Positions 26,201-64,000 of a stretch of DNA of 64,000 bases are shown in pieces. The stretch is taken from contig NIVC01002585.1 in assembly GCA_002269645.1 (NCBI GenBank), positions 17,279-81,278 on the forward strand, read 5' to 3'. Below the pieces are notes generated by a model. The model had not been told where the DNA came from, ran no database searches, and was given only the letters and a program-made list of their open reading frames with translations. A program made the translations under genes and the position numbers. Each line of letters begins with the position of its first letter. The stretch's first letter is position 1. Source of the DNA: Macrostomum lignano. Lineage: Eukaryota.

Positions 26201-29200
26201 CTATAGATATCTGATCTCATCATTTTTAATTATGTATCTATTTTCCTTATCTTTATTTATACATCTGATCTCATGATATTTATTCATATATCTATCGTCT
26301 TCATTTTTATCCTTTTATCTGATCTTACCATCTCTACAGATATCTAATCCTACCATCTCTACAGGCATCTAATCTCACCATCTCTACAAATATATAATAT
26401 CACCATCTCTAGAGATATCTAATCCCACCATCTCTACAGACATCTAATCTCACCATATCTACAGACATCTAATCTCACCATCTCTACAGACATCTAATCT
26501 TACTATCTCTACAGACATCTAATCCCACCATCTCTACAGACATCTAATCTCACTATCTCTACAGACATCTAATCTCACTATCTCTACAGACATCTAATCT
26601 CACTATCTAATCTCACATCTAATCTCACTATCTCTACAGACATCTAATCTCACTATCTCTACAGACATCTAATCTCACTATCTCTACAGACATCTAATCT
26701 CACCATATCTACAGACATCTAATCTCACTATCTCTACAGACATCTAATCTCACCATCTCTACAGACATCTAATCTCACTATCTCTACAGACATCTAATGC
26801 CACCATCTCTACAGACATCTAATGCCACCATCTCTAAAGACATCTAATCTCACCATCTCTACAGACATCTAATCTCACTATCTCTACAGACATCTAATCT
26901 CACTATCTAATCTCACATCTAATCTCACCATCTCTACAGACATCTAATCTCACTATCTCTAGACATCTAATCTCACCATCTCTACCCTCTACAGACATCT
27001 AATCTCACTATCTCTACAGACATCTAATCTCACTATCTCTACAGACATCTAATCCCACCATCTCTACAGACATCTAATCTCACTATCTCTACAGACATCT
27101 AATCTCACTATCTAATCTCACATCTAATCTCACTATCTCTACAGACATCTAATCTCACCATCTCTACAGACATCTAATCTCACCATCTCTACAGACACCT
27201 AATCTCACTATCTCTACAGACATCTAATCTCACCATATCTACAGACATCTAATGCCACCATCTCTACAGACATCTAATCTCACCATATCTACAGACATCT
27301 AATGCCACCATCTCTACAGACATCTAATCTCACCATATCTACAGACATCTAATGCCACCATCTCTACAGACATCTAATCTCACCATATCTACAGACATCT
27401 AATGCCACCATATCTACAGACATCTAATCTCACCATATCTACAGACATCTAATGCCACCATCTCTACAGACATCTAATCTCACCATCTCTACAGACATCT
27501 AATCTCACTATCTCTACAGACATCTAATGCCACCATCTCTACAGACATCTAATCTCAGCAATCTCCCCGAGCACTCACCGGCAGCATAGCTCACAACAGC
27601 CAGCAGAGAAGGCAGTTGCACCACCAGACCGAAGATGAGCAGTACTCCCAGAAAGCTGAACTGCATAGTCTTACGTCCCCTGGGCACCCAGGACCCGACG
27701 GAGGGCCAGACTCCATGCCAGATATGCATCATGCTGGCCAGCTGTACAATGGTAGAGAACAGGCCCCACAGAGGCGGGCTAAAGTCGTAGGTATCCCAAG
27801 CCAATCGATTCAACGGTATGGTCGATGCAAAATTCTTATAGAATCTTTGCCAGTATTTGTCCAGCTGCTGATGAGACGCGTTGCCAATGATAACTCCGAA
27901 TGGAATTAAGAACAGAATCAGAGCCAGGGGGGCTAAGATGTACAGTAGGATGCCCAGCACGCGAGGTCCCCACAGTACAACCAGAAATATGAATATCCAG
28001 TTCAGCAGATGCGGCACAACATTCAATCCGTCCATTAGAAACCAGCGCGGGAACCAGATATCCGAGATGCTGTTGCTGATGTCCATGTTGAAGTACAGGT
28101 AGAAGCCTTCTTCTGGAGTGGGCCCGTGCTGTGTCTGCGCCATCAGGCTGAAGGAGTAATCGGAACTCAGTGGGCTTATCATCCACTATTGATTTCTGTC
28201 TCCCTTCATTTATATATAATCTCGCTGCCGTTCAAATGTAATCTCCATCTATATCTAATCTCCATCCATATCTAATCTCATTATATTCATATCTAATCTT
28301 AGTGAATCCATATCTTATCTCACTTAATCCATATCTAATCCCATTTATCCTATATCTAATCACCTTAATCTCTATCTAATATCACTGAATTTGTATCTAA
28401 TCTCACTTCATCCATATCTAATCCCATTTATCCCACATCTAATCCCATTTATCCCACATCTAATCACCTTAATCTTTATCTAATATCACTGAATTTGTAT
28501 CTAATCTCACTTCATCCGTATCTAAACTCATTTATCCAATATCTAATCTCCTTCATCTCTATCAAATCTCACTTCATCCATAACTAATCTCACTTCATCC
28601 AGATCTAATCTTATTTATTTCATATCTAATACCCTTAATCTATATCTAATCACCTTTTATGTATATTTAATTTCTCTATCCATATATCCCTAACCTCATT
28701 CATTTCATTCATATCTAATCTTCATTTATTCATTCTTTTTCTATTTAATATCAGATCATACTGTATTCGATCTCCCTGCCATCGATATCTAATCTCACTT
28801 CATCCTTATCTAATATGACAGATATCTATAACATCTATAATTAGCTCCATATATACTACTCACGGGCGGCACTCGATTTTCTTATTCCACTCGTCGGCGC
28901 AGCTGCCCCACATGTAGGTGGCGCCAACGCAATAGCGACTATCGCACGGGTAAACAGAGAAGAATATGTACGACAGGCAGTGCGTCATCACGCCCGAGAT
29001 GTAGATTATGCTAATTAGATTGCGAATGATCATGGCTAAACCGAAACCTGCGATTTTTGAAAAAAATGATGCATTTAATCAAATTTAGTTTGACTATTAA
29101 TAAATGTTAATTAAGATATATATCATTTATATTTCATTTATTAAAAAAAATTTGTTAACTATTTTTTATGATCAATTTTTTTCCTACGATTTACCAATTT

Positions 29201-45569: not shown

Positions 45570-48500
45570 ATGATGGATGAGTGTGTGAAATGGTTCGAAA
45601 GAAAATTGGAGTTCGCGGTGCAAGCAACTATCCCAGAAACAAAAAATCTCATTGAACAAGATGAATACAAGTAAGAATGTTTGCGCATTTTTGCCATCTA
45701 ATTAAGTCACTGCTGATAATGCTGATGCTTATATAGTATTGAAACTTTTATATCCAATATTATTTTAGACTCGCATTTTACGAGTTCATCGACAATGAGG
45801 ACGTCAAGAAGCTGTACGCCTACAGACGCAACGGAGCTTTGCAGGTGTCCCTGTATCCACCGTACGATTTCCAAGGGAAATCTGTCTTCTTCCTCAAGAA
45901 GAGTCCTATTAAAATAACGCCAGAAAATATCAGTACGTGAAATATGCAACCTTTGATGCATCTATTTTGGGATTATTTCAACACAAAGTTTTCTTATGTG
46001 AACTACAGAGGGAAATCAAAGAGGGGTTCTATACGTGAGAATCGACCAAAGTCTTTTAGTGGGAGTCCTTGTCTTTTAGTGGGAGTCCCTGTCTCTTGGT
46101 GGGCGTCCCTGTCTCTGGGTGGGCGTCCCTGTCTCTTGGTGGGCGCCCCTGTCTCTTGGTGGGCGTCCCTGTCTCTTGGTGGGCGTCCCTGTCTCTTGGT
46201 GGGCGTCCCTGTCTCTTGGTGGGCGTCCCTGTCTCTTGGTGGGCGCCCCTGTCTCTTGGTGGGCGTCCCTGTCTCTTGGTGGGCGTCCCTGTCTCTTGGT
46301 GGGCGTCCCTGTCTCTTGGTGGACGCCCCTGTCTCTTGGTGGGCGCCCCTGTCTCTTGGTGGGCGTCCCTGTCTCTTGGTGGGCGTCCCTGTCTCTTGGT
46401 GGGCGTCCCTGTCTCTACGTGGGCGTCCCTGTCTCTACGTGGGCGCCCCTGTCTTTTATTTTGTGGGGGCGCTTTGGTTGGAGGGGTGTTCGCGGCCCCC
46501 CTCTATCGCTGTTCAGCATGATTTGTCGTCAAGGCACGTCACTGACGCAATCAATCACTCAAACATTCAAAAATCACACAGACTCAGAGGTCAGCTGCAC
46601 CGAGGGCTCATCCTCGCTGCTCAACCACACCCACCTGCTACTGCGGGAAATCTTCCTGCCGAGCCTGTGCGCTGCCAGACCTGCCGCCGCGGTGCCTTCG
46701 TCCACGGCGTCCTACCAGCCTAGCGAGGCCGGCGATGCCGCCGCAGCCGCCGCCGCCGCAGCCGCCGCAGGGGGCGTCAACGTGGACAAACTCTCCGACT
46801 TCTTGCACAGGCTGATGGCAACAGTGGAGTCGGCTCATTACCAGTCGCAGGGCGACACTGTGCTGTCGTTGCCGAACCTGGAAGTGCTGACGCAGGCCAG
46901 CGAAACCAGAGGCTTGGCCGTGGTGCACATCTTAGAGACTACCGTGGTCAACTGGATGAAGCAGATTCGGGTGAGTATTGGCGCTGATCTTCTGTTGGCC
47001 ACTACAGGTGCAAGTTAAAATTTCCTGTAGTGCTGCAGGACATAAACGCACAGTCCAACAAAATTGGCTCTAAGTTAAATTAAATGTCGCGAAGTCAAAC
47101 GAAAATGATGCTAAATTAAATTAGACAGATGATTATCTATCAATATGTTCAATCTGATAGAGTAGATGTATGGTTGAACCATTAGAGCAGGTACGTCCTT
47201 GGAATTGTGCTTGTTGGAACACTTTAAAAAAAGATTTACCTGTTGACACAGGTGTTGATTTTTTATATATTGTAGTTACCTCATCATCCAAGAGCATTTC
47301 CACTATTTGTGAGAAGCTATCGAAGTAAGCAATCGAAGACATATCTTTCTATTGAAACGAACACTTGCGACCTACAGGGTAGACCCTATGTGAGCGTGTT
47401 TATGAGCGCGGGTCTGAGTGTACAGTATTGGCGGGCTTGTATGTGCTGCAATTATTAAAACTATATAAATAACTACTCACACAGAGCGCTATCCGAGCCG
47501 ATCCCATCGAGCAGCTGCAGCACAAGTACGGCGCAGACGCGGGCCCGCTAGCCGAGATAGAAATCTGGCGCGATCGCGAGAAGACTTTCAAGAGTTTGCA
47601 GACCCAGCTCGAACAGCAGGAAACCGTGGACATCATGTCCTACCTGCATGCCAGCTCCAGCAATTACGCTGCTTCGTTCAACGAAGTCGTGTTTGAAATC
47701 GACTCGGGCAGACAGTTTGCTCAAGAGATACTCAAATACCTGGGCCCGCTGGAGGCTTGGGTGAACGAGCTTAGGGAGGCTCGAACGCTGACTGAGAAAG
47801 CCGATCGATTGAAACCAATACTGCGTATTGTGCTGCTGCTGTGGAGCAATCACAGCTGGTACCATCAGGTGAGAGACCTGCCTATATATGGGTCTTCTTG
47901 TACACGCATCTATGCGTAGGTGAGCAATGCAATCGAGAAGTCAAACGAGAAGCTTTGGGAATCTCAAAAATGTCGATAGGAAATCTTCAGGCGAATCCAA
48001 GGAGAATCTCTAAGGGAATTCAAGGGGAATCTCTGATAGACTCCAAGGAGAATCTGTAAGGGAATTCAAGTGAAATCACTAAGTGAATCCAAGGGGAATC
48101 TCTAAGGGAATCTCCAGTGGGAATCTTTAAGGGAAACTCAAGGGTTATCTCTAAGGAAATCTCAAGTGAATCTCTAAGGGAATCTACAAGGGAATCCAAG
48201 GGGAATCTCTAAGGGAATCCAAGGAGACTCTCTAAGGGAATCTAAGGGAATCTCTAAAGGAATCCAAGAAGAATCTCTAGGGGAATCCAAGGGGAAGCTC
48301 CAAGGGAATCCAAGGGGAATCTCCAAGGAAATCCAAGGGGATCTCCAAACGATCCAAGGGGAATCTCTAAGGGAATCCAAGGGGAATCTCCAAAGGAATC
48401 TAAGGGAATCTCCAAGGGAATCCAAGGGGAATCTATCTCCAAGGGAATCCAAGGGAATCTCCAAACGATCCAAGGGGAATCTCTAAGGGAATCCAAGGGG

Positions 48501-51500
48501 AATCTCCAAAGGAATCTAAGGGAATCTCCAAGGGAATCCAAGGGGAATCTCCAAAGGAATCTAAATGAATCTCTAAGGGAATCCAAGGGGAATCTCTAAG
48601 GGAATCCAAAGGTAATCTCTAAGGGAATCCAAGAGGTATCTCTAAGGAAATCCATTGGGAATCTTTAAGGGAATTCAAGGGGAATCTCTGGGGGAATCCA
48701 AGGGGAATCACTAAGGGAATCCAAAGGGAATTCGTAAGCAGAATAATCCAGCACCAAGCCTTCCTTCCTCCTTCTCCAGAGCCGGCACCTGTGTAACTTG
48801 CTCCAACTGCTGGCTAACGAAGTTGTCCATCTAGCCATCGACTACGTTGGCAAGGACGTACTGAAAGATCCGCTGCAGTCGTTTCACAAGCTGAAAGACG
48901 TTCAGAAGTTCTGTGCCGCATTCAAAGGCGCCTACGTGGACTGCCGCGAGGAGGCCGACGCCATCAATAAGAAAAATGTGGCCGACAATTTGGAGAAAAT
49001 GTGAGCCTTTTGATTCTGAGCAGTTCTTATGTGATGGAAATCGATATTTTGCATTCGTTGCTTTTTCACGCTCCGGTTTGAGTTCCCCACAAAAAGGCAT
49101 AGACTATAAGGCTTAGACTAATCTTATGCTTGATGCTCATAGACTAATCTCATGCTTGATGCTCATAGACTAATCTCATGCTTGATGCTCATAGACTAAT
49201 CTCATGTTTGGCGCTCATAGACTAATCTCATGCTTGACGCTCATAGACTAATCTCATGCTTGACGCTACGCTCATAGACTAATTTCATGTTTGGCGCTCA
49301 TAGACTAATTTCATGTTTGGCGCTCATAGACTAATCTCATGCTTGACGCTCATAGACTAATTTCATGTTTGGCGCTCATAGACTAATCTCATGCTTGATG
49401 CTCATAGACTAATCTCATGCTTGATGCTCATAGACTAATCTCATGCTTGATGCTCATAGACTAATCTCATGCTTGATGCTCATAGACTAATCTCATGCTT
49501 GATGCTCATAGACTAATCTCATGCTTGACGCTACGCTCATAGACTAATCTCATGCTTGATGCTCATAGACTAATCTCATGTTTGGCGCTCATAGACTAAT
49601 CTCATGTTTGGCGCTCATAGACTAATCTCATGCTTGACGCTCATAGACTAATCTCATGCTTGACGCTCATAGACTAATCTCATGCTTGACGCTCATAGAC
49701 TAATCTCATGCTTGACGCTCATAGACTAATCTCATGCTTGATGCTCATAGACTAATCTCATGCTTGACGCTCATAGACTAATCTCATGCTTGATGCTCAT
49801 AGACTAATCTCATGCTTGACGCTCATAGACTAATCTCATGCTTGACGCTCATAGACTAATCTCATGCTTGATGCTCATAGACTAATCTCATGCTTGACGC
49901 TCATAGACTAATCTCATGCTTGACGCTACGCTCATAGACTAAGCTCATGCTTGACGCTCATAGACTAATCTCATGCTTGACGATCATAGACTAATCTCAT
50001 GCTTGATGATCATAGACTAATCTCATACTTGACTTATTCGAACCCCGGGGTTGACTCTGTAGCGAGCGTCAGCCACTTAGCAGTCTGCCGCGCAACAACA
50101 GTTCTTGATATTTCTATTTTTATCTACAGGAAAAATGATCCAACCTACAAGTCTTCATACCATGCATTCGCGTAAGGAGAAACCGAAGTTCAGTCAAAAG
50201 ATGCTGAGAATTTTTGTTTGTTTATTAGAAAGTTCATTTTGTTTCTATTTTGCCTGTTCAATTTTTGTTTAAAACTTTCTCAAACTTATAGACAGTTGAC
50301 ACCCCTCTATTTAAGCTACTAATTTAACAGATTTGCCTTTGCATGTACTACTCATAATACCTACATGAGGTTGCATCAAATTACATGAAATTAAGAACTT
50401 AGAAAACACGTGCATGAATTTTTGTGTGAACTAATTAAATTCTGTACTCTCTGTGCAAATCAAATTTGATTCAGTTTTCTTTTAAGTGCCTGCAATTTGA
50501 TGCATCCTTAACCTACATCCCATTCATAACCTGTTCCAATTTAGCTGGCAAAGGTTTTCCCAGCCTTGACTTCTAATCTGTCGATTTATTGATTTAACAA
50601 TCTTATCCAATGCCCAATGCTCAACTTTAACCTGCAGCAATCACATGCCAAAGCCGGAGATTTGGTCAGTTCGAATGTACGGACCGCACAAGTACAATTT
50701 CAAGCACGGACTGAAACGGTCGGAGTACTTGAACGACCCGGAGTATCAGGTTGACCCGGTGCTGCTGGACAGTCCCTGGCCAGCTAGGAATGCCCCGTGC
50801 TTCGCCCTGTTCAACGCCTTCATGGAGCGCTGCACGGACTGTCTGGAGCTGGTGCAGACAACGCAGCACTTTCGCCTTCTGGCCGATGCTGCAGAGATCG
50901 GCGGCGCCGGCAGTCAGTCATTGGACGCGATCGTTCGAGAGATACACGAGAAATACAGCTCAGCCATGAGCGACTTCTTTGAGCAGGTCACTAACGTGCT
51001 CGACTTGAACCGGCCGAAAGAGTTTGAGAGAGCGTTTTTCGATTTTCGGACGGTGGTTCGGGTGAGTGCTGGCACTAATCTGTGCTCGCATGTTTGTTAC
51101 AGAAAATGCCGATGCCAGTTATAGTTGGGACAGGTGCTTAGTCAGAAGGGGTCATCCAGTACAGTTTTGCAGTAGCTTTGGCGCTTCTGGTGCTGGCGCC
51201 TCTGGTGCTGGCGCCTCTGGTGCTGGCGCCTCTGGTGCTGGCGCCTCTGGTGCTGGCGCCTCTGCTGCTGGCGCCTCTGCTGCTGGCGCCTCTGATACTG
51301 GCGTTTCTGGTGCTGGCGCCTCTGGTGCTGGCGCCTCTGGTGCTGGCGCCTCTGGTGCTGGCGCCTCTGGTGCTGGCGCCTCTGGTGCTGGCGCCTCTGG
51401 TGCTGGCGCCTCTGGTGCTGGCGCCTCTGGTGCTGGCGCCTCTGGTGCTGGCGCCTCTGGTGCTGGCGCCTCTGGTGCTGGCGCCTCTGGTGCTGGCGCC

Positions 51501-54500
51501 TCTGGTGCTGGCGCCTCTGGTGCTGGCGCCTCTGGTGCTGGCGCCTCTGGTGCTGGCGCCTCTGGTGCTGGCGCCTCTGGTGCTGGCGCCTCTGGTGCTG
51601 GCGCCTCTGGTGCTGGCGCCTCTGGTGCTGGCGCCTCTGGTGCTGGCGCCTCTGGTGCTGGCGCCTCTGGTGCTGGCGCCTCTGGTGCTGGCGCCTCTGG
51701 TGCTGGCGCCTCTGGTGCTGGCGCCTCTGGTGCTGGCGCCTCTGGTGCTGGCGCCTCTGGTGCTGGCGCCTCTGGTGCTGGCGCCTCTGGTGCTGGCGCC
51801 TCTGGTGCTGGCGCCTCTGGTGCTGGCGCCTCTGGTGCCAACACGAACAAAGAGGAGACGCTGTAAAGCGCAGCCCATTGAATAAACGTTTCCATGGCTA
51901 CGCCCTTGCATTGGAAGTAATTCTAAAAGTAACTACAGTGTGTGAGTGTGCACGCATTTCAAAAACAGAGTTTTAAAGATATAAAATGCACACACGAGCA
52001 GCCCCCATGAGACTCTGGCAGAAGCCTGTGCATACTCTTCATTCCTAAAGATTCTTAACTATCGCAGAAATCTAATCTAATAAATCTTTTACTATAAACA
52101 TAACAAAGACAACTTAGGTCTGCAATTATCTGTATAACCTGTTGGTAAGTCTTCAACTTTGCAAAAAGTAAGTTATTTAGATGCAATATTTTATACGCAA
52201 GGACTTGGAAATATTGCAAAATTGTAATTGCACTTATATGATATCTGTCAAATTGTACTTTTGTCACTGTCGCTGTATTTATTGTCACGGCATACTGCTA
52301 GGAATGATAGCTCTTGAATAAATGTTATGGTCGCTTGAAGAAATAATTTACCTATGAAATCGGTTGCCAATTCACATCACACAATTGATACTTAAATCAC
52401 AAAATCGCACACAAAACGCACAACAGGGCTACTGACTGATCAGTAGTATGCCAGTAAACTGAATCCAATGGCAATTTTTTTAAAATCTACGAGAAAAACT
52501 ATATAAAAACTGCATTTTCAGGACGGTGGAAAATATACCGAAGGAGTAGGTTTGACTTTTAAAATGAATTTGTTGTACTAAAATCCGCCAGAAAATTCCT
52601 GTTTTGCGTCAGTGTTTACTAGCTACTAAATAAATCATCACTACGATGTCAGGAATTAGACTTTAGCTTTTCAATTTTTATTGCCATTTCCTATTAGCGG
52701 GGTTGAAATATACTCTGTGTCTTACGTGGTTCTAGCCACGTCAGGCTCGCCACTTGAAGGTCGGGGGTTCGATTCCCGTTGCCGTACTGTAAGTTTGCAG
52801 TACTAACAACCCCCGTTTGAATTACAGGCATCCATAGATGTCAAAATTAAAAAAAGAATTTTCATGTACCAAATTAAGTACGATTTCATGTAAAAAAACG
52901 TTCCACCGAAGTCAAATTTGAATGCACGCGAATTTTCAAGATATTACTAACAAAACAGTTACTAAACGCATTTTTTTATTTACTGACTCAAAAGTACTAA
53001 TATTTTACAGTACAAATTTATATATATTTTCAGGATCCAAATAATTTATCTCAAAGCTTTAAATTTATGTCAAATATCATTCAAATCTTACAGGAACTCG
53101 AACGTTGTCTGGCCAAAATTCTTAGCCAAAGTCTGCAACAGTGCCCAACAGTGCTGGCTCAGCTACGACTACTGGAGGTCTTCGAGGGCATCAGCGGACG
53201 AGAAATTGTACAGGTAGGTGAGCAGACCCCAGCGGTTGTGAGAGCAATTCTTAATGTGTGGCTAAAACGATATTAACGACTTAAGATACATGTCAAGATC
53301 TGAGTTCTGAGATCCTGAGCTCGTTTTCAACTGGTCTCCATCTGTGAACTCACTTTTGTGCGATACACTTTCAACTTTTCAACTTATTAAACATTTTGTT
53401 AAAGTCCACATTTCCTACTTTTACCTTTTACCAGGAGGTTCTCAAAGACAAGGACGAGCTAATAGTGAAGAGTTTTATTGACGATCTGATGGTGGTGCAG
53501 GAGATCTTCCGCAGTCAGCGCGCTAACCCACCGCCGATCCGACACATGCCGCGGTTCGTCTCGACGCTGTACTGGTTGCGCGGCCTACGACAGCGTCTGG
53601 AGCAGCCGTGGCTCAAAATTCACAAGGTGTCGCCGCACATGCTTACTGGCGAGCTGGGCTACCAGCTTAAGACTCTTTACGCCGAGGTGTTCGAACAGGT
53701 GACTAGCGAGGAGGCTGCACTGGTTAGCGAGTGGCAAAACGGCGTCACCGACTCTCTGTTCGACTACATGAAGAACTCTCTGCTAGTGTGCAAGGAGACT
53801 GGTGACCTAGATCAGTACGAGGTCAACTTGGATCCGAGGCTGGTGCGACTGTTGCGCGAGATGCGTCACGTGACCGGGGAGCCGTTCAACCTCGGCCTGA
53901 CCGCGGCTGGTCGTCGACTGGCTCGCCTGACGGACTTGGACAAGCTGCGCACCCTGGCCGCCCGATTGGACACCATCGTTGCCACGTACAACGGCATCAT
54001 GCAGAGCCTCACCGAGTCCGAGTTCTTCCTGCTCCAGAGTCACGTGCTCGACGCTCAGCAACTATTCCGACAGGGGTGCAGCGCGTACACCTGGAAGTTA
54101 GAGGAGTCGGCTGACTTTGTCGAGCGTTCGCACGTTCTGGTGCTGGAACTGTTGGCTAAGACGCTGAGAACTTTGAAGAGCAACTGCGACGAGATTCGAT
54201 CAATTGCCGACGCGTGGACGTCCGGAGTGTTGGATATTTTTCAGGTAAGGCTCAGACTTCGATGGGTAGCTAGAAAATTAAATCGCCATTTATAAAATAT
54301 AATGAAAGCCTGAAAATAAAGTAATGAGCATGAAGGCCAAAACTCTTAGGTAAAGTGTTTGTTTGCATGCGAGTTCAGCACACAACTACGGAACTCCAAT
54401 ACATTGACCATATTGTAGGGTCGCGAGCCGGGCGTCAGCTACGAACCAGAGCAGCTCAAACTCATGCACCGACAGCTCACTGACAGTCTGGAGGCTCGAA

Positions 54501-57500
54501 TGCAGCCAAGCAACAATCGAATCCACGCGCTAGTCGAGTCCAGCTTCCAATCGTTGAGCATCAGCAAGGCCTCCCCAGTTTGGCTAGCCTACGTTCGTGT
54601 TATCAATGAAGACATCGTGTTCGCCCAGCTCAAAGAGTCGGTCATGACTAGCCTGGACAACATGGCCAACTGCCTGGCGCTAGCGGGGCTCACCGGGCCG
54701 CACAACCCAACTGCGCCGATCCTGACTGTCAGACTTGACCTGGTCCAGTGCCGCATCAGCTTCAGACCGCCATTGGACGAGTTCAGCTACGAGAGCAGCG
54801 TCACAGAGATGGCTCAGAGCTGGATTACTGACTTCCTGAGTCGAGCTGGTCTCCTAACAAACTTACTGGCCGATCTGCCAGAAAACGATGATCAACTAAC
54901 TAAGGAGGAGCGAGCGCCGTTCCTAGACAAGATCCTAGCCGATGTCGAAGTTACCGACGCTCGCGCTAAGATTCTCGAAGCGGTGGTGAATAACTCCGCC
55001 AACTGCATCGAGTACGTGGAGTACCTGAACGACTATCGCTACCTATGGGTGCCGGATATCGCTGAAACCTTTCAACAGTTCCTTCAGGGTCGAGCATCGC
55101 CAAACCCGGCTCGAACGCCTAGTCGATCGATGCAAAACGCCTCGTCGACGGTATTTCAGACGTCCAGATCGAGGCCGAGCTCAGTGAGATCGCGTTTGAC
55201 TGCCCAGCAGGAGGAGAACATGGACGCCGAAGCTGGAGGCGGCGAGCTCTCGCTTGGCGAGCGAGCCTTCCTGACGCCGAAATCGTCTGGCCAAGCTGGC
55301 ACTTGTGTGCCGTCGCTAGCCGAATTCCAGGACGAAATCGAACTCTACCTGGAGGCTAGACAGGAAATCCAGGAGATGCCAGATAGCAGCAATCAGGTAA
55401 AGTTCTGTTGCGATGTTAATTTACGAGTATTATCCAGGATTATCCTATCTAAAACTTTCACGTGCTTCTCTACTTTTTCACCCTGCAGGGTTGGCTACTA
55501 ATCAACATGCGGCCGTTGAAGCAAGTGCTGATTACACTAGCCAATAAATGGGTGTACCAATTCACGTCTTACCTGACTGAGCAGGTGCTTGTAACACTAC
55601 GCGAGTTGGACGAATTTCTGCAAAAAATCGAGCCTCAGATTGAAAGGATCAGTGGCCAGGAGAAGGACACTTACAGCTTCATGCGGCTGATGCGGCTGTT
55701 CAATGAAATTTCATCCAAGCAGGTGGAAATGGACGCCAGATTTGACGTTATGCGACGAACTATTCGACTATTAGACACGTACGAATGCGAGCTGCCGGAG
55801 GAGATTCGCGATCCAGACGGTCTCGTGAGCGTTCATCGCTGGCAACAGTTGAAGAACAAAGTCATCTCCGCCAAGCAGAAGCTCGGCCCCAGAATTCACA
55901 ACGAGCGAAAAACTATCGAGACTGATTTGGTCAACTTCCAGTCCAACGTGCAGTCGCTGTCGGACGATCTGTTCGAGTCGAACGTCTTCAACTATTCCTG
56001 CCTGCTGTCAAAAGTTCAGGAGTTGCTCGCTGACTTCTCGCGCACTCTGCGCGACGTTGAAGAAGAGGCTCAGGATCTTCGAGAGGTGCAAACTCTTCTC
56101 GGTAGTGACGTCATCGAGTTCGAAATGATTACCGAGTGTCGGGAAACGCTGGACAATTTGAAGATGACCTGGGAAACGGTCCGATTGCTGCTCTCCGAGC
56201 AGGCTGACTGGAAAAAGCTCCGATGGAAGCGGCTGAGTCCATCGCAGCTGATCGAGGCCTGCTGCACCCAACTGGCAAGGTTAGAACGGCTGCCGAACCA
56301 GTGCCACGACTGGGACGTATTCGAGGGAATCTGCGGCGAGATCGCGGCAATCAAACGTGTGCTGGAACTCATCGACCAGCTGAAAGATCCGGCTATGAAG
56401 CCGCGGCACTGGAAGCAGCTGGTTCGGCTGACTGGCGGTGTGATCCAGATCAACTCCGAGTCACTCGAGGTCATGACGCTTGGAGAACTGCTCAAATTGG
56501 GACTGCAAAGTGAGTAAATTGCCAGTAACAGTTCTCTATCTGCGCGCTTGTATGTGCTCAGTAGTCAGTGAAATGGACAGAATTGCATCACAGCTGGCTG
56601 CACCAGGGTGGCAAGAACCCTACTGCGAATATTTATGCTTCACTAAAAAGTTATCCCCAAATTTCAGACAATGCGGATCACGTGACATCGATTGTGAAAC
56701 GAGCGAAAAGTGACAAGGAGATCGAGGAGGCGATCAAAAACTTTGACAACCTGTGGATGAGCAAGGTGTTCGACTTGAAGCTGCACTACATGACGCCGGT
56801 CGGCGAAAGCTCAGAAGACGCCGACGGAAGAGGGCCGAATGTAAGCCTGGACCACTGGGGAATTAGTGCTAGATTCAAAACGAGAAACTGCCATCTCGCT
56901 TCACTTTTGCTTTATGACTTGAGTAACTATAGTAACTTGTTATTGAAAAAGTCAGAAAAGGGAACAAAACCTTAGTTTATGTACAAAGACTCTTTCCACA
57001 ACACGTCTTGTATCTGAGCTACATGTAGCTTTCTGTAAGTTGTCTTTTTTCTTTGGATAGTTTATATTTGATCAGTCACAACCTTCATTGTTTTTGTTTA
57101 ACTCTAAAAGCTTAATTTCAGACACTTACATAGCTACCATTCACTTCTGCTATGCTCTATTTCTATTTCAGATGACAGTAGCCTCAATTGAGCCACACGT
57201 TTCGAGACGAAAGCTTAGACAAGTAATCAGACAAGGAAAAAGATTAATTTTGCTCGTAAACTGATTGATTAATAGAAGGAGATAAAAATTTGTAAAGCAT
57301 ATTTTAATAGCAAAATGTTCCACAACTTGTCCTTAGTGAATTGCCACACTTTTCAGCGTTGTACAATCCATTTGTTACTAATCAGATCTGAAGAAAATCT
57401 GAAGCAAATGATGGTCCCGCTCTCAACTAACTAAATGTAATACGAGTAAATCAGTAGTGATATTGTCAATCTTTACTTTGTGTACACTCTAGAATTCGCC

Positions 57501-60500
57501 TGTAACCCTTTTACCGAGAAAAAAACTCATCAAAACTATTGTTTATAGTGTATTTCACGTATCCTGTATTGTGAATTTTTGTTTTATTCGTCGTGAAACT
57601 AACTCAGAAACGTATTAATTGCATATTAATCAAATTTAAATCGCATAAAAATATTATAATCTATTCCTCGAATCCGCAGGGCTCAGGTGCCGGTTCGGCC
57701 AGACGAACTTCGATCAGCCGGATGTCCGGTCGCAGTGCCGGCATGCAGAGCATCGCCTCGCTCCCAAGCAGCCTCATTGGTGTCGAGATGGAATCCGATA
57801 CTCAGATCTACTTGTTGGACAACACCGACAAAGTGTTCGCTGAGCTGGCTGAGCACCAGGCCTCGCTGGCTGAAATGCTGGCCAGCTCAACTGCTGGAAG
57901 CTACGTAGATGACATTGGTAAATGGCAGAGAACTTTGCAGCACATTGAGACAGTGCTCATCCTGTGGCTGCGCGTGCAAGACAAGTGGTTACAGATGCAG
58001 AACATCTACGAGTCGGAGAAGGCATTCTCTGCTCTGCCTGAGTACGCCAAATTTCAAATTGCTAGCGCCGATTTTAAACGGCTGATGCAGGCGACTAAGA
58101 AGAATCAGAATTTATTGCAATGCTGCAATCGGAAGTGTAAGTAGAACATGAGCTTATGATGCAGAATTTCTTTACCGTCTTGTGTAGATTGTCTTTATGA
58201 AATTAGCATTGTTACCCCGGTCACTTGGCTGCTTCTGTCATTGTCGGTTCCTTTGCAGCATATTACCAACATCATCGCCCCCATCCCGATATCGATACCT
58301 GTGTCAAATCGGCACCTTACCAATGTTTCCTTTAGTCCAATGCTCCGGGTATCGGTACCTCTGTCCCGTCATCATGTACCGATCGATACCTCTGTCACAC
58401 TGACATTTCTGGGACAAACCTCTATCTAGCAGAAAACGAATGCCTCGCTGACTACCTCAACCTGTCACCTTCAACAGACATCGTGCCAATCCTCGACCGC
58501 ATGGACAGCCTGCTTCGCAAGTGCCGGGAAGAGCTGGTATCCTATCTAGACGGCCAGATACGCGCCAAGTTTCCTCGGTTCAACTTCCTGTCAGCCGAGG
58601 ATCTGTTCCTGGTGTACGGCAGTTGCCACGACGCGGAGCTGTTAAACCGTCACATTGGCAAACTGTTCGAGAACGTCGGCGAGCTGGTGTTCACCAGACA
58701 GAGGACAATCCGGCCGTCTGCGAGGTGACTGGGATTCGCAGCCGACTTGGCGAAGAACTGCCGCTGACCAGCCCAGTAGTCTGCCGCGGCCTCGACTGCA
58801 GTTGGCTTGGCGATCTACTGGAGGCGATTCGAGCGCCCTCAAAACGCAACTCGCCGCTACTTTCGGTGAGGCGGCGAAGTCACCCGACGCAGACGAATAT
58901 GAAAATTTCGAGACGAAGCAACAGCACAATGACGAGCCGACACCAGAAGAAGAAGAAGAAGAGAATGAAGTCGTTGAAGGAAGCAAAAAAGAAGTTAATT
59001 CGAGGCCTCAGTCACAGTCGCAGTCAGCTTATCAGAAGCAGCAGCAAGAAAAGCAGCAGCAGCTTCAGTCCATTCTAAAGCGTCGGTTGCCGAAGAACGA
59101 CAGGGAGGCGCTAGCAATGATGGCTGGTGAGCCGATCAGTTCCGTGTTTAACGACGCGCTGGAAAGACTGGAAGCCCCCAAGGGAAATAAGCAGCAGCAG
59201 CAGCAGCAAGATGAGGCTTCGGAAAAGCTTGAGTTGTCAGCAAGCCAGCTGCTGGACAGCGTAGCGGAAGTGTGCCACCTGCGAGCTCAGATTGACTTTT
59301 CAACTCAAGTCGATCAAGCTGCCTACGCCAGCGATGGCTGGAAGGAACAGCTCGGCAAGGTTCGATCTGGCCTGCGAGGAAGCCAGGACCTCTGTCGACG
59401 CTTGCTTATACTTTTCGACAGAATTATCGCTGAAGCCGAGTCCATCAAAGCTAAGGAGCGAGCAGCAGCAGCTGAGGCGGCGGCCATCTCGAGAGCCGCG
59501 TCAAAAAAAGCCGTCCGATTGAGGCAGCCGCGCGATGAAGGCGAGAAGAGAACGATGCCGATTCGGACGACGATGAGGAATATATGGATCTGGAGGATGA
59601 GGCCGCGGAGGACCGCAGTCTGGCGGACACCATTCGAGAGAGAGCCGCAAGTGCAGCGACACCAGCGGCTTCAGGCGCAGCTGCTCACGCAGAGCCCGAT
59701 GCTGACGAACAACAGAAGAAGGCAATGAAGCCGCAAAGACGACGCGGAGAAGCCAGCATCTGGCGATGATGATGAGACAGGTGAACCAATCGAAGGACAA
59801 GGCGATGAAGAGAAGCCAGAAGACAACGAATCAGCAGCTCAGGAGCCTGCTGCAGAAACCATCGACGAAGTGAATCAATTTGACTTCAGCGACACAGCCC
59901 GTAGAAGATCCGATGGTGAAGATTCGAGCTAATGCCAGGCTATTGCTAGTTCCGGCACAGCAGGCTAAGCTGCGCCAGCTCATTCTCCTGTTTGGCTACC
60001 AGATTGCCCTTATTGACGCGTGGACCGGGCAGGAGAAAGATGGACATGAAGAACGCAGATGAGGTAACATGCTATAGTATTTTAGTCATGAGTTTACTTA
60101 GACAGTACAGAAAAGTTCATAAGGTTATAAATTACGTTTTCCACAGGCACCAGACACTGAAAACAGCGGCAGTGAGGCAGACGTGCGGCAGCGCTTCCTA
60201 GACCAGTGGGCCGGCGAGTTGCGCTACACCCGGTCCTCCGAAGACGGCTCAGTGCAGTTGCACTGTTGCGGACAAAGTCTCTCCTACGGCTGGGAGTACA
60301 TCGGTTCAGCTGAGCGCTGTCCTCAGAGCACTAATGTGGCGGGCAATCTGATCTATAATACTAAGCATCGATTCCCAACGCTCTGCCATTCGGACAATAG
60401 TGACAGTGGAAGCTCTGGGGGTAGCATGGAATTGTTCGCGGCATTGTGGAATCTCGCTGTGGCTGCCGGACGTCCGCTCTACTGCGTCGCCTGCTCACCG

Positions 60501-63500
60501 GAGCTGCCAGACCTCAGTCTTGAGTACGCTTTTGAAGGCTTAACTACAGCGGACGGCATCTGGTTGTGCCTTCGTTCGGTGGACTCTCTCTGTCTGGAGT
60601 CGGCGAACAAGCTGGCTCGCTTGCTGACACAAGTTAATGTCGCTCCGGCGGCTGCGTCTCAAGCGCCCAAAGACTCAGTAGATGACGGAGAGGACGCTCC
60701 TTCAAAGCAGCAACAGCAAGACGATGAGCAAGAAGCAGTCATGACAGAGAACAGCGCATGTTTCTGCACTTTGGGAGGTAACACCCGGTCTCAGAAGCGA
60801 CATAGCGATACTGTACCGTTCGCTGTGAGACCCATCGAATTTGAAGATTTTGCAGCCGCTCTGCCTATTTCGCTGCTCACTCGACTTGTGCCTCTGCGCA
60901 TCACGGAACCGAGTGTCTTCACCCAACGCGCTCAGGCTGAAGCTAAACTAGACTTAATTGGTTTTAAGCATCCTAAACTACTGGCTGATAGACTTGTGGA
61001 CTTTTTGGCTAGTTACAGAAGCATTTGCGACCGTCTGGAAGACTCCTTCGGTAAGTGACAGGGCTTAATCAGTGCAATGCGCGTAACAATTGATGTAGAC
61101 TGATTGAAGTAAAATTATATTCGAAATCTAGTACTCAAAGAAAAAATTCATTAATAAATTGAAATTTCAGCTGATCGCGACCGGGAGTTCCGCACACTAC
61201 AGTTCCTCAGCCAAGTCGTGGATGCGGCGGAGCGGCACTATCCGAGGCAGGTGGAGTTGCACCTCAACAAAATCAACGTTCACATGCACAATCAGTTTGT
61301 GACAAACCAGCGCATGCGAACGGAGATGAGCAGCCTGATGGCTCAGTCGGAGCCACGCCCCGAGCCCCTGACTAAACTACCAGAGGATGTTTTGCCAGAA
61401 GTTCAAAGCCACAGTCTACTGCTCGGCCTGCGGGACCTGCTAGCGCCTGCATTTCGACGCCAGTCTGAGGGTCAGCTTTTTGAGCAGCTGGCCGTTGAGT
61501 TATTCCCCGGCTGCCCTCCGAGCTTAGACTTTCGCGAGGCTAACAGTGCTGAAGAGCGCTTTGAGACGCCCAAGTCAGAAGATGGAGCAGATGCAAAGCC
61601 GCCAGCTACGGCTGCGTCTACCACCGCTGGTGCGAAGAGAACGCCCGAAAGTGCTGCAGTCGAAACGACACCTCTAAGCCTGGTGGCGGCTCTCGATCAT
61701 GTGTTGAACGGGGACCGTTTCATCAACAGCGTCCCTTTCGAGTGCAGCTTGACAAAGCTTTACAACATGGCGGAACACTCAAACGCCGTTGCCATCGTTG
61801 GACCAAGCGGCGTTGGCAAGACAACAGTATTCCGCGCTTACGAGCGCCTAATGCAGCTAATGCAAGTGCCGATGCAAGTACAGTGTCTCTATCCGGGTGC
61901 TCTCTCAGCCGAAGAGCTCGTTGGAGCATTTGAAAAAGGCCGATGGCAACCTAGTGTGCTAGGGGCACTTTTGAGTCAGTTTACGTCATGCTCAACTGAC
62001 GAAACTAGTAGCAACGATTCTACTCGGCGCAATTTGCTGCGACTTGACGGTACCTGCAGCGCAGCCCAGTGGGAAGTTATCCAGAGCCTGTTAGATAAAC
62101 CAAACTTCATCACACTTCTTAGTGGTCAGAAGCTTATCTTTCCAGAGCCTATTCGCGTCGTCTGGGAGATGGAAACTCTAGAGGACTGCAGTCCAGGCCT
62201 GGCCTCGAGAGTGCAACTCATGTTCGTCGGTCCGATTCCTCCCCGGTGCCACCGTTTCTAACGCGCTGGCTGGAGGATCGTCCTGGCGATGAGTCGTTGA
62301 GCTTGATGACTGTGTTTGACAAGTATTTGCCGAAACTGCACGGGTTCGTCACCGAGGCCATGAAGCAGCCAACGCTGGGACGGCCGATGGGAGGACTACC
62401 AAGGCTTGAGCGACTTATCAACCAATCGTACGAGAGTTCGTTGCGTACAACACAACGGCTGTTGGAAAGTCTCATCAATTCAGCTTCGCTGCATCAACTG
62501 CGCGACGAAGACTATGAGCAGCTGGTCGTGTTTGCCGCTGTGTGGGGCTTCGGCGCCAATTTAACTCAAGATAGTCAGCGAAAAATGAGCGAATGGTGGC
62601 GAGCTACGTTTGAAAACGAGAGAATACCGCAGCAAGGCTCAATATTCGAATACTACTTGGATGTGGATCGGCTAGAGTGGCAGCCCTGGCAAGAGCTGAT
62701 ACCTATGTATCAGGGCACCATCAATTCCGGCATTCCAACGCACGCTTTTGTCCAGACACCGTCTAGTCAGGCGGTGAGTTACTGTCTGAGCCTCCTGTCT
62801 GACTTGGGCACCCCGGTGCTGCTGGTTGGGCCTCGCGGCTGCGGCAAGTCGGCCATTGTCGGCGAGCGCATCCGTACCGTCTGCAGCAGTGAAGTGTCCG
62901 AAATTCTGAACGTCAGCGTGTACGCGAACCGTTACACAAATGCTCGCCTCATTACCGAGAGGCTCGACGAGAAGCTCGAATGGAAGGACGGCAAGCTGTA
63001 TGTACCTCTCGGCGGCAAGCGACTCATGTGCTTTGTTGACGATCTTAATCTAGCCGCCACAGACGATGCGGGACGTCAGACTTCCAGTGAACTGCTTCGT
63101 CAGCTCATCGACGAAGGCGGGCACCATTTTGCAGCAACACAATCCTGGCGAACATTGAAGTCGCTGCACTTCATCGCCGCACTCAACCCAGGCATAGCCG
63201 GCGGCGCCACTGTCAAGCAGCGATTTGTGAATCATTTCAGCGTGCTGGCGGTCAATTACCCCAGCCAAGCTGAGCAGTGCCGCTTGTTCTCCACGATGAT
63301 AATGGCGCACTTCTTTCAGCACAATGAGACGGCGCTATCGCCCGAGGAGATTCGCGTCATGCACAGCTACGGGCCAGATCGATCGGTTCGATCGCTGCTG
63401 GATCAACTGGTTCGGGTTACAGTGGATTTGCAGGTAAATTCGGGTATAGTTGATTTTTAATTCGAGGGTTTTAAGAATTTACTGAATCGAAAATTTGATG

Positions 63501-63933
63501 TTCTGCATCAGTTTATGATACAAATTTCGAGCACTAAAAGTCTGAAATAGGATAGCAAACATACCTGAAAGTAATTAATTCGTTCTTTTTGAAAAGAAAT
63601 GTTGATGAAACATTCTAAAGTTTATTGCGCAAGTTCCTTTAATTGCTGCAAAAATAACATTACGTAATTTTCTTTCGACAGGAGAACCTCCGTTCGATGT
63701 TCCTACCAACGGCTCGTCGCAGTCACTACGTGTTCTCGCTGCGAACTCTGAGCACCGTTTTCCGCAACCTCTGCCAATCGTTGAACAGCGACGTGCAGAA
63801 AAAGCCACTTCTGCAATTGTGGCGCAACGAATGCGACTGGGTGTTCGCCGAACGCATGGTTGACTACGTCGACAAGGATCGGTACAGGCGAGCCTTTGCC
63901 AACGCCGTGAAGAAACAGTTTGCGGAGGAATAC
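45570..63933 (+). CDS. Axonemal dynein heavy chain-like protein (outer-arm beta/DNAH9-11-17-like tail), 5' part through AAA3; AAA1 degenerate; several frameshifts; continues off the right edge
   Basis: Exons: 45570-45670, 45769-45932, 46588-46970, 47485-47868, 48780-49000, 50130-50171, 50638-51061, 53094-53213, 53435-54244, 54419-55396, 55489-56509, 56668-56840, 57680-58136, 58478-60063, 60147-61050, 61171-63433, 63682-63933. Motifs GPLAEIEIWRDR (DHC_N1), GWLLINMRPLKQ, MKPRHWKQL, WLRVQDKWLQMQNIY, FPRFNFLSAEDL (DHC_N2), LSYGWEYIG, GPSGVGKT (AAA2), GPRGCGKS and CFVDDLN (AAA3), FLPTARRSHYVFSLR. Confidence 0.9.
46052..46455. repeat. 20-bp minisatellite (GTGGGCGTCCCTGTCTCTTG)n, dynein intron 2
   Basis: Directly visible. 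Flanks resemble decayed MITE ends (CAGAGGG...AGAGGGG / CCCCTCTATCGCTG). Confidence 0.93.
47990..48735. repeat. Degenerate ~11-23-bp AAGGGAATCC/AAGGGGAATCTCT repeat, dynein intron
   Basis: Directly visible. Confidence 0.9.
49115..50032. repeat. 26-bp minisatellite (CTCATAGACTAATCTCATGCTTGACG)n, dynein intron
   Basis: Directly visible, about 35 units. Confidence 0.96.
51131..51908. mobile_element. Older hAT-type MITE of the same TIR family as 5633-6863, filled by a 15-bp (GCGCCTCTGGTGCTG)n array (51177-51838)
   Basis: Left CAGGTGCTTAGTCAG (12/15 to CAGGGGCGTAGCCAG), right ATGGCTACGCCCTTG. Flanking 8-mers AGTTGGGA / CATTGGAA (5/8). The array itself is certain; the MITE frame is less so. Confidence 0.65.
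52716..52785 (+). mobile_element. Degenerate SINE head / tRNA-like fragment, dynein intron
   Basis: CACTTGAAGGTCGGGGGTTCGATTCCCG matches the SINE head B-box region. The A-box side is degraded. Confidence 0.55.
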
Positions 63934-64000
63934 GTAAGCAATCTTACGCGTTTATATACGGATTTTTTTATTTGCGCATTTACCAGTTGTGCAGAGCAGC

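Follow-up and report, generated by a model that had tools for sequence, protein, structure and literature searches.

Dynein heavy chain classes were expanded to 17 in a classification by Kollmar (2016, Mol Biol Evol 33:3249; PMC5100056). Class 11 is metazoan and corresponds to human DNHD1. Class 12 occurs in Holozoa and combines a class-3-like tail (DNAH5/8) with "an extremely unusual stalk". Class 13 is specific to Metazoa, lacks a human member, and is described as having a class-4-like tail, a longer AAA5 and low-complexity C-terminal extensions. Classes 12 and 13 were proposed to form an outer-arm-like heterodimer, and the author states that ATP hydrolysis sites were left unanalysed (PMC5100056). 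The present analysis concerns a gene for a dynein heavy chain in the flatworm Macrostomum lignano, located on the + strand of a 64,000-nucleotide stretch of contig NIVC01002585.1 (positions 17,279 to 81,278; this whole stretch is called the window), in which the first ATPase site, AAA1, has lost all of its catalytic motifs.

Pseudo-motor dyneins have become established only recently. One is DNAHX of sea-urchin sperm, a DNAH8-like, alpha-derived heavy chain of 5,272 aa (Chai et al. 2025, bioRxiv 10.1101/2025.01.18.633724). DNAHX is rich in disordered insertions and has insertions in the stalk, the microtubule-binding domain (MTBD) and the AAA4-small domain. In cryo-electron microscopy (cryo-EM) structures, ATP is trapped at AAA1, Walker B is kept, and the motor is locked in its pre-power-stroke conformation; its partner, a second heavy chain left unidentified in the preprint, has a normal stalk. 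The subfamily spans aquatic animals from sponges to amphibians, is absent from amniotes, and has AAA1 motifs that are poorly conserved (bioRxiv 10.1101/2025.01.18.633724). By their descriptions, DNAHX and Kollmar's class 12 are apparently the same. Another is DNHD1, once considered a "ghost gene", which is required for sperm flagella, in humans included, and for nodal cilia.

The region singled out in the initial annotation (60147-63433) is most likely the AAA1-AAA3 part of an intact, transcribed heavy chain gene, the flatworm member of an old family derived from outer-arm beta chains (most probably class 13) that would provide a non-motile head. The family has already been classified, and the concept of a non-motile axonemal heavy chain, put forward for this locus by the initial annotation, has since been demonstrated experimentally in a different, sister family, DNAHX (bioRxiv 10.1101/2025.01.18.633724). 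Neither Kollmar 2016 nor the DNAHX preprint describes AAA1 or AAA4 decay in class 13, inverted conservation, or a flatworm member. The beta-derived sister family, too, has lost AAA1, completely in M. lignano, along with the AAA4 P-loop.

The nucleotide sites of the ring

The AAA1 exon (60147..61050) covers the large domain of AAA1 and the greater part of its small domain. All motif strings quoted in the initial annotation were found on the + strand at the places given for them, and the motifs of the three modules are as follows.

60279-60305, +: anchor LSYGWEYIG
60387-60437, +: AAA1 Walker A position, HSDNSDSGSSGGSMELF in place of GPAGTGKTE; no lysine, no P-loop
60564-60590, +: AAA1 Walker B position, LCLRSVDSL in place of GCFDEFNRI; both acidic residues gone
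60759-60779, +: AAA1 sensor I strand, CFCTLGG in place of FITMNPGY; an insertion follows
60861-60911, +: AAA1 arginine region, LPISLLTRLVPLRITEP in place of LPENLKALFRPCAMVVP; arginine gone
61185-61211, +: AAA1 sensor II position, EFRTLQFLS
61800-61823, +: AAA2 Walker A, GPSGVGKT, intact
62040-62075, +: AAA2 "DG" Walker B region, RLDGTCSAAQWE (LDG)
62828-62851, +: AAA3 Walker A, GPRGCGKS, canonical for axonemal dyneins
63026-63049, +: AAA3 Walker B, MCFVDDLN, canonical for axonemal dyneins
63173-63205, +: AAA3 sensor I, IAALNPG (ALNPG)

Homology alignment places these strings on the canonical positions: GPAGTGKTE is replaced by HSDNSDSGSSGGSME, CFDEFNR by CLRSVDS, ITMNPGY by FCTLGGN, LFRP by RLVPL, and WGLRA by FRTLQ. 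All five canonical class-4 AAA1 motifs (GPAGTGKT, CFDEFNR, MNPGY, LFRP and GLR) are therefore replaced in M. lignano. The claim that AAA1 is dead at Walker A, Walker B and the sensor/arginine region is borne out, and the substitutions support a site that would be unable to bind or hydrolyse ATP in the canonical manner. The motif positions also agree with the statement that AAA2 (GPSGVGKT) and AAA3 (GPRGCGKS, CFVDD) are intact. AAA4 had been left for checking; its P-loop is degenerate as well (AEGNPGIS), and the ring is thus deader than was assumed.

The AAA1 exon is nonetheless recognizable as a dynein module. It lacks a Pfam AAA_6 match, or a Pfam match of any kind, but phmmer aligns it to outer-arm alpha/beta AAA1 at E 3.6e-4. 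A canonical AAA1 hidden Markov model (HMM) scores 21-28 bits on the M. lignano module (28.5 bits corresponding to E 7.8e-8) and 117-179 bits on orthologues that span most of it (117-163 for full-length vertebrate members, 179 for Saccoglossus). The exon is open across 301 codons, for which base composition gives P 4e-6, and none of 20,000 shuffles remained open. An alternative exon with canonical AAA1 motifs was sought by profile and by motif in six frames, and none is present in the window or in a sister locus described below. An AlphaFold2 model of the AAA1 module, built from a three-row alignment, had a pLDDT of 42 and was not used; its strand and helix order is AAA-like at too low a confidence.

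A probably beta-derived family and its class

Relatives were found first by exhaustive HMMER search, using the spliced AAA1-AAA3 product as query, and then with a clade profile. After the self match, a distinct group scores between E 1e-110 and 1e-73 at 31-41% identity, and canonical dyneins begin at 4e-68. The group includes proteins from Pleurodeles waltl (5,410 and 5,702 aa), Protopterus annectens (5,930 aa), Lepisosteus oculatus (5,254 aa), Acipenser, Erpetoichthys, Polypterus and Saccoglossus kowalevskii, which are very long or fragmentary and carry database names such as "dynein beta chain-like", "DNAH9-like", "DNAH17-like" and "uncharacterized". Salamander, lungfish, gar and bichir thus have orthologues of 5,200-5,900 aa, whereas the sturgeon (Acipenser) and acorn-worm (Saccoglossus) matches are partial. 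The clade profile adds a sea-urchin fragment, from Lytechinus pictus (1.8e-103), and in a distance tree two environmental sequences and a partial cephalopod protein, from Argonauta hians and probably a member, fall in the clade. Named members represent Platyhelminthes, Mollusca, Hemichordata, Echinodermata and non-amniote vertebrates. Word-indexed searches with the AAA1 exon and AAA3 had returned no homologue, as the index misses relatives at 30-40% identity and the AAA3 cut-off was too strict. The suggestion that the gene belongs to a little-studied invertebrate clade was thus mistaken, as salamander, lungfish, gar, bichir and sturgeon all have members of this family, which matches class 13 (PMC5100056).

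Several derived characters unite the clade. "EY.GS" follows the anchor, and an insertion after sensor I is shared. At Walker A, either another residue stands in for the threonine or the P-loop has disappeared (GKRS, GKKS, GKKT, GRRE, GRVE, and none in M. lignano). The acidic residues (DE) of Walker B are missing from every member spanning AAA1, including the Lytechinus fragment, and the remaining catalytic residues of AAA1 have degenerated to an extent that differs between members. At AAA4, none of the three members in which the site could be read (M. lignano, salamander and gar) has a P-loop; besides the AEGNPGIS of M. lignano, the degenerate form GEGCPKSS occurs in the clade. Insertions lie at common sites in the tail, in the linker and before AAA2, one of them of 36-39 aa in the tail. 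M. lignano is the extreme of this family-wide trend, with an AAA1 more degenerate than in the other aligned members.

Two sequences from the HMMER search were noted in particular. P0012 (2,647 aa, from environmental ENA contigs) groups with the clade in the tree and is a second lineage in which the AAA1 P-loop is completely lost, with ISDNILLAKK at Walker A and LFSDLHN at Walker B. P0009 (4,745 aa), from the ichthyosporean Chromosphaera perkinsii, has a tail scoring 603 bits to M. lignano versus 302-456 for canonical beta chains, and its AAA3 bears the clade signature "DDLNLA"; AAA1 Walker B is lost (LICKEVG), while GIGKT and the AAA4 P-loop are kept. P0009 suggests that either the family or a forerunner whose AAA1 was half dead may be older than animals.

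Conservation in the clade is inverted relative to that in canonical dyneins, with the tail and linker more conserved than AAA1. Between M. lignano and either salamander or gar, the tail and linker are 33-41% identical and AAA1 16-27%, whereas fish DNAH11 and an oomycete (Phytophthora) beta chain share 22-28% in the tail and 65-68% in AAA1. Over their entire length (residues 1-1877), the tail and linker of M. lignano can be aligned with those of Pleurodeles, at 35.7% identity (1138 bits, versus 302 bits for fish DNAH11). This pattern suggests that selection acts on the tail, the linker and the AAA3-AAA4 region instead of on the engine.

The gene encodes a full heavy chain whose tail is clearly of the outer-arm beta type, in agreement with the initial annotation, which had described a full-length, outer-arm-beta-like tail. 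Its best matches are Chlamydomonas outer-arm beta (5.9e-94, 319 bits), Tetrahymena beta (1e-81) and trypanosomatid chains (1e-57), ahead of DNAH9 (4e-48), DNAH17 (6e-37), DNAH5 (1.7e-25, 92 bits) and Chlamydomonas gamma (3e-19); beta chains score 167-319 bits. AAA3 gives 153 bits (about 9e-44) to DNAH17/DNAH9 versus 77 bits to DNAH5. Pfam recognizes DHC_N1 (3e-35, 6e-22, 2.5e-11) and DHC_N2 (1e-22, 6e-22) in the tail and linker, and AAA_7 (2e-37) and Dynein_AAA_lid (9e-20) in the AAA3 part. Matches to solved structures are dynein heavy chains without exception. Canonical class-4 chains (DNAH9, DNAH11, DNAH17 and Chlamydomonas beta) resemble the M. lignano protein in tail architecture and sequence, in AAA3, and in the AAA2 and AAA3 P-loops. 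They differ in having the AAA1 catalytic motifs and the AAA4 P-loop, in lacking the large linker and pre-AAA2 insertions, and in their conservation profile.

The clade most probably corresponds to Kollmar's class-13 dyneins (DHC13). Like DHC13, it is metazoan and absent from human, its tail is homologous to outer-arm beta over the full length, and its motor is divergent, so that canonical queries pick it up poorly. The motor may form a group of its own outside the nine canonical classes: the clade scores far ahead of canonical dyneins (1e-110 to 1e-73 versus 4e-68 or weaker), and a neighbour-joining tree of AAA2-AAA3, which carries no support values, sets it apart on a long branch. Vertebrate orthologues have a longer AAA5 region, with insertions of 24-49 aa in Pleurodeles and gar, and a low-complexity C-terminal extension (about 550 aa, acidic, beyond the canonical C-terminus in Pleurodeles; about 170 aa in gar). 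The named members show the metazoan-only, non-human distribution, and the ichthyosporean P0009 shares some of the features. By contrast, the description of the class (PMC5100056) mentions neither the missing AAA1 motifs and AAA4 P-loop nor the conservation of tail over motor.

Gene structure, frame breaks and rival identities

The gene extends on the + strand from about 45.6 kb past the window end. The borders of the region singled out in the initial annotation are exact splice boundaries, with an acceptor (AG|G) at 60146/60147 and a donor (CAG|GT) at 63433/63434. The parts of the gene in the window are listed here.

45573..58135, +: tail and first part of the linker; 12 coding exons placed by exact-match mapping of the annotated protein P0151; Pfam DHC_N1 and DHC_N2
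45573-45671, 45770-45931, 46584-46970, 47485-47868, 48780-48998, 50639-51061, +: exons 1-6 of this part
53094-53213, 53435-54244, 54419-55396, 55489-56508, 56670-56840, 57680-58135, +: exons 7-12 of this part
58480..60063, +: linker exon, with a low-complexity insertion inside and the final linker helix AKLRQLILLFGYQIALIDAW at its end
60147..61050, +: AAA1 exon, 301 codons plus 1 base, phase 1 at the 3' end, flanked by splice sites
61051..61170, +: intron of 120 nt (GTAAGT...TTTCAG); the spliced product equals the annotated protein
61171..63433, +: exon for the end of AAA1-small, AAA2, lid and AAA3; includes the AAA2 N-terminal insertion; one base missing at about 62231
63682..63933, +: next exon, AAA3 lid and start of the AAA4 region, ENLRSMFLPTARRSHYVFSLR..., preceded by a 248-nt intron

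The linker insertion (about 350 aa, at approximately 58835-60050) is acidic, contains poly-Q and poly-E, and separates the WL...helix region from the final linker helix; the insertions that salamander and gar carry at these sites are shorter, about 50-100 aa. In the exhaustive HMMER search, the spliced AAA1-AAA3 product was 100% identical to P0001 (PAA93228.1), labelled in GenBank as "hypothetical protein BOX15_Mlig011306g2" of M. lignano. PAA93228.1 is the product of a sister copy. All copies carry the label "hypothetical protein", including the 3,854-aa product of another sister copy, PAA89001.1, and the 1,829-aa product that matches the window copy, PAA56712.1 (P0152). A literature search found no mention of the gene identifiers Mlig011306 and Mlig007579. 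Exons in the window are GC-rich (52-54%), and introns are AT-rich and filled with minisatellites. A ciliate-type genetic code was considered and dropped, given the exon GC content, the ordinary splice sites and the exact match to the annotated protein.

The annotated protein maps exactly onto the window once eight exonic frame corrections are made between 58.7 and 62.3 kb; at six of these eight points, one nucleotide must be used twice. The window between 57.6 and 63.87 kb was aligned with the sister locus (L001, NIVC01000031.1), and the single-base differences fall as follows.

58700, 58833, 59544, 59709, 59733, +: frame breaks in the linker exon, base missing relative to the sister locus
59895, 60049, +: frame breaks in the linker exon, extra base relative to the sister locus
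60071 (intronic), 62231 (base missing, AAA2/AAA3 exon), +: other single-base indels relative to the sister locus

The initial annotation had spoken of a frameshift-free exon, which holds for the AAA1 exon only; the AAA2/AAA3 exon needs a one-nucleotide fix near 62231 and the linker exon seven fixes. Besides the nine single-base indels, the two loci differ by two intronic substitutions, with no exonic substitution and no in-frame stop. The AAA1 exon and the AAA1-AAA2 coding sequence are identical in both. The sister locus has an intact open reading frame (ORF), in which AAA2 and AAA3 form one unbroken ORF (L001 12243-14543). Tiny introns were rejected as a cause of the frame changes: neighbouring coding segments overlap by one base, and the sister locus holds the extra base.

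The assembly, Mlig_3_7, is a highly redundant Canu assembly of PacBio reads with 180 Mb of duplicated blocks at >=95% identity, that is, at least 95%, and its gene models were built from RNA-seq transcript assembly (PMC5730564). Many indels together with no substitutions form the error pattern of a long-read consensus, and duplicated blocks are where short-read polishing is weakest. The eight exonic frame breaks are thus most likely assembly errors, reflecting what appears to be unpolished PacBio consensus in a duplicated region. It is improbable that the window copy is instead a decaying pseudogene, a redundant leftover of recent genome duplication in the DV1 line whose dead AAA1 is part of the decay. 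Such a history would account for the eight breaks, for the matching GenBank protein (P0152) stopping at the first of them, and for the presence of the copy in the DV1 genome with its duplicated blocks. However, the AAA1 degeneration is common to orthologues separated by more than 500 million years and so long predates any recent decay, and the same AAA1 exon is found in the intact sister locus. The indels, all nine exonic or near-exonic, with no exonic substitutions or in-frame stops, fit consensus errors rather than mutation, and all exons between the breaks remain open. The intact sister ORF, the RNA-seq-based models and the orthologues across Metazoa likewise indicate that the gene is not a pseudogene, which the initial annotation had named as a possible refutation.

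Comparison of L001 14991-15796 with window positions 63197-64000 revealed that the segment 63197-63907, which runs from the last part of the AAA3 exon across the intron into the following exon, is present twice in tandem in the sister locus. It is not repeated in the annotated protein, and the tandem could be either a real 0.7-kb duplication or an assembly artefact.

Orthology to DNAHX, and so apparently membership of class 12, is very unlikely, although the likenesses are considerable. Both are outer-arm-derived, extra-long axonemal chains rich in disordered insertions, with a non-catalytic AAA1 (poorly conserved across the DNAHX subfamily) and a similar range (aquatic animals, no amniotes). 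In the Lytechinus pictus clade fragment, valine even takes the place of the Walker A threonine (GRV), as is reported for DNAHX. At the DNAHX positions V2221, S2322 and K2393, its V and K match and its S differs. This ambiguous result is outweighed by the absence of Walker B and the P-loop lysine from the same fragment. DNAHX belongs to the alpha/gamma (DNAH5/8) lineage and branches with outer-arm alpha, whereas the clade tail scores 319 bits to beta versus 92 to DNAH5. The AAA1 of DNAHX, which binds ATP, has kept its Walker B and a P-loop able to bind nucleotide; M. lignano AAA1 has neither, and clade members spanning AAA1 all lack Walker B. DNAHX has a folded-back stalk and insertions in the stalk, MTBD and AAA4-small domain, whereas Pleurodeles and gar have none of at least 25 aa between AAA2 and the AAA5 region, and their MTBD region aligns with that of DNAH11. 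Kollmar, too, separates class 12, with its alpha/gamma tail and aberrant stalk, from the beta-tailed class 13. By these descriptions, the beta tail and the missing Walker B set the clade apart from DNAHX, and the orthologues, read from AAA3 through the stalk, have no insertion of at least 25 aa. Finally, DNAHX is tied to sperm and external fertilisation, while the sperm of M. lignano are aflagellate and the animal copulates.

DNHD1 is a still less plausible identity. A flatworm orthologue of this class-11 metazoan protein would share its degenerate AAA1, reported to lack the Walker B catalytic residues, and its disordered insertions. However, DNHD1 is present in mammals, and no mammalian protein is among the ten best named matches; the NCBI names of the relatives are beta-chain-like, DNAH9-like and DNAH17-like, and none is DNHD1. 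Kollmar keeps classes 11 and 13 apart and assigns the beta-like tail to class 13. Judged by description and database names, without direct sequence comparison, no link between the clade and DNHD1 was found.

That the gene is simply a fast-evolving flatworm outer-arm beta chain (a DNAH9/11/17 orthologue in a fast lineage) is hardly credible: outer-arm beta chains are indeed the best solved-structure matches for the tail and AAA3, but the nearest relatives are a separate paralogous family named only "-like" or "uncharacterized", canonical beta AAA1 stays 65-68% identical from fish to oomycete, and a motor without any AAA1 P-loop cannot be a force-generating beta chain. Flatworm cilia beat using outer arms, and the vertebrates of the clade presumably also have canonical DNAH9/11/17.

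Several points count against a class-13 pseudo-motor encoded by an intact gene. The window copy has its eight exonic frame breaks and a GenBank product ending at the first, and this copy could itself be non-functional even if its sister copies are not. The neighbour-joining tree of AAA2-AAA3 puts the clade on a long branch, at the midpoint root and outside both outer-arm groups; the tree was not used as evidence of alpha or beta ancestry, and beta ancestry of the motor is not seen there. Class-13 membership was judged from described features and taxon distribution, with no joint tree including labelled DHC13 sequences. The C-terminal part of the M. lignano protein (AAA5, stalk/MTBD and extension) lies beyond the window, and gene models end in AAA4 or the stalk. 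The loss of motility is deduced from motifs alone.

Proposed role and neighbouring sequence

The family keeps a linker, the AAA2 and AAA3 nucleotide sites, and a beta-type tail, which serves for dimerisation, for the binding of intermediate and light chains and for docking on the doublet. Nothing required for incorporation into such a complex is therefore missing, and the M. lignano protein may assemble into a two-headed, outer-arm-like complex, in which, with no AAA1-driven power stroke or linker swing, it would serve as a non-motile head. AAA2 and AAA3 probably bind nucleotide, either structurally or as a regulatory switch. By analogy, DNAHX, which cryo-EM shows locked and paired with a second heavy chain, is the best working model for its action. 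The protein could then be a partner of fixed conformation, there to hold, inhibit or position a second heavy chain in transport or assembly. Another option is a cross-bridge at outer-arm positions, either static or switched by nucleotide. The role as "brake, spacer or scaffold" put forward in the initial annotation is likewise an inference.

Sperm of the Macrostomorpha are aflagellate (PMC4446793). The site of action in M. lignano must therefore be somatic motile cilia, such as those of the epidermis and protonephridia, and the presence of the gene in this flatworm argues against a role purely in sperm or external fertilisation. It may be that class 13 is the second heavy chain of "dynein-X", so that classes 12 and 13 pair in a wholly non-catalytic "pseudo outer arm". 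Kollmar predicted the pairing, and class 13 has a beta-type tail and a stalk of normal length; the proposal is nevertheless a doubtful one. If it is true, the occurrence of the gene in an animal with aflagellate sperm would make the pair a device of motile cilia in general, serving assembly, transport or static cross-bridging, and not a sperm adaptation to external fertilisation. A class-12/class-13 heterodimer could be checked in existing sea-urchin cryo-EM and mass-spectrometry data. RNAi works in M. lignano, and its ciliated tissues are transparent. Transgenesis is available as well, which makes the function of a pseudo-motor dynein directly testable in the worm.

Upstream of the dynein gene, an intact 766-aa ORF at 11009-13309 on the - strand has weak matches to DUF1258, Transposase_21 and DUF4218 and is likely to encode a DNA-transposon transposase. 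Two open segments on the + strand, at 17740-18612 (291 aa) and 19647-20138 (164 aa), have no Pfam match and may be exons of an unrelated upstream gene; a 21-bp minisatellite (18574-19485) lies between them. Minisatellites are dense across the window, with units of 14-50 bp and up to 65 copies each (for example, at 1-972, 2468-3378, 5703-6782, 23666-24965, 25794-27565, 49114-50033 and 51179-51838). Several of them are located within dynein introns and produce long spurious ORFs in all frames.

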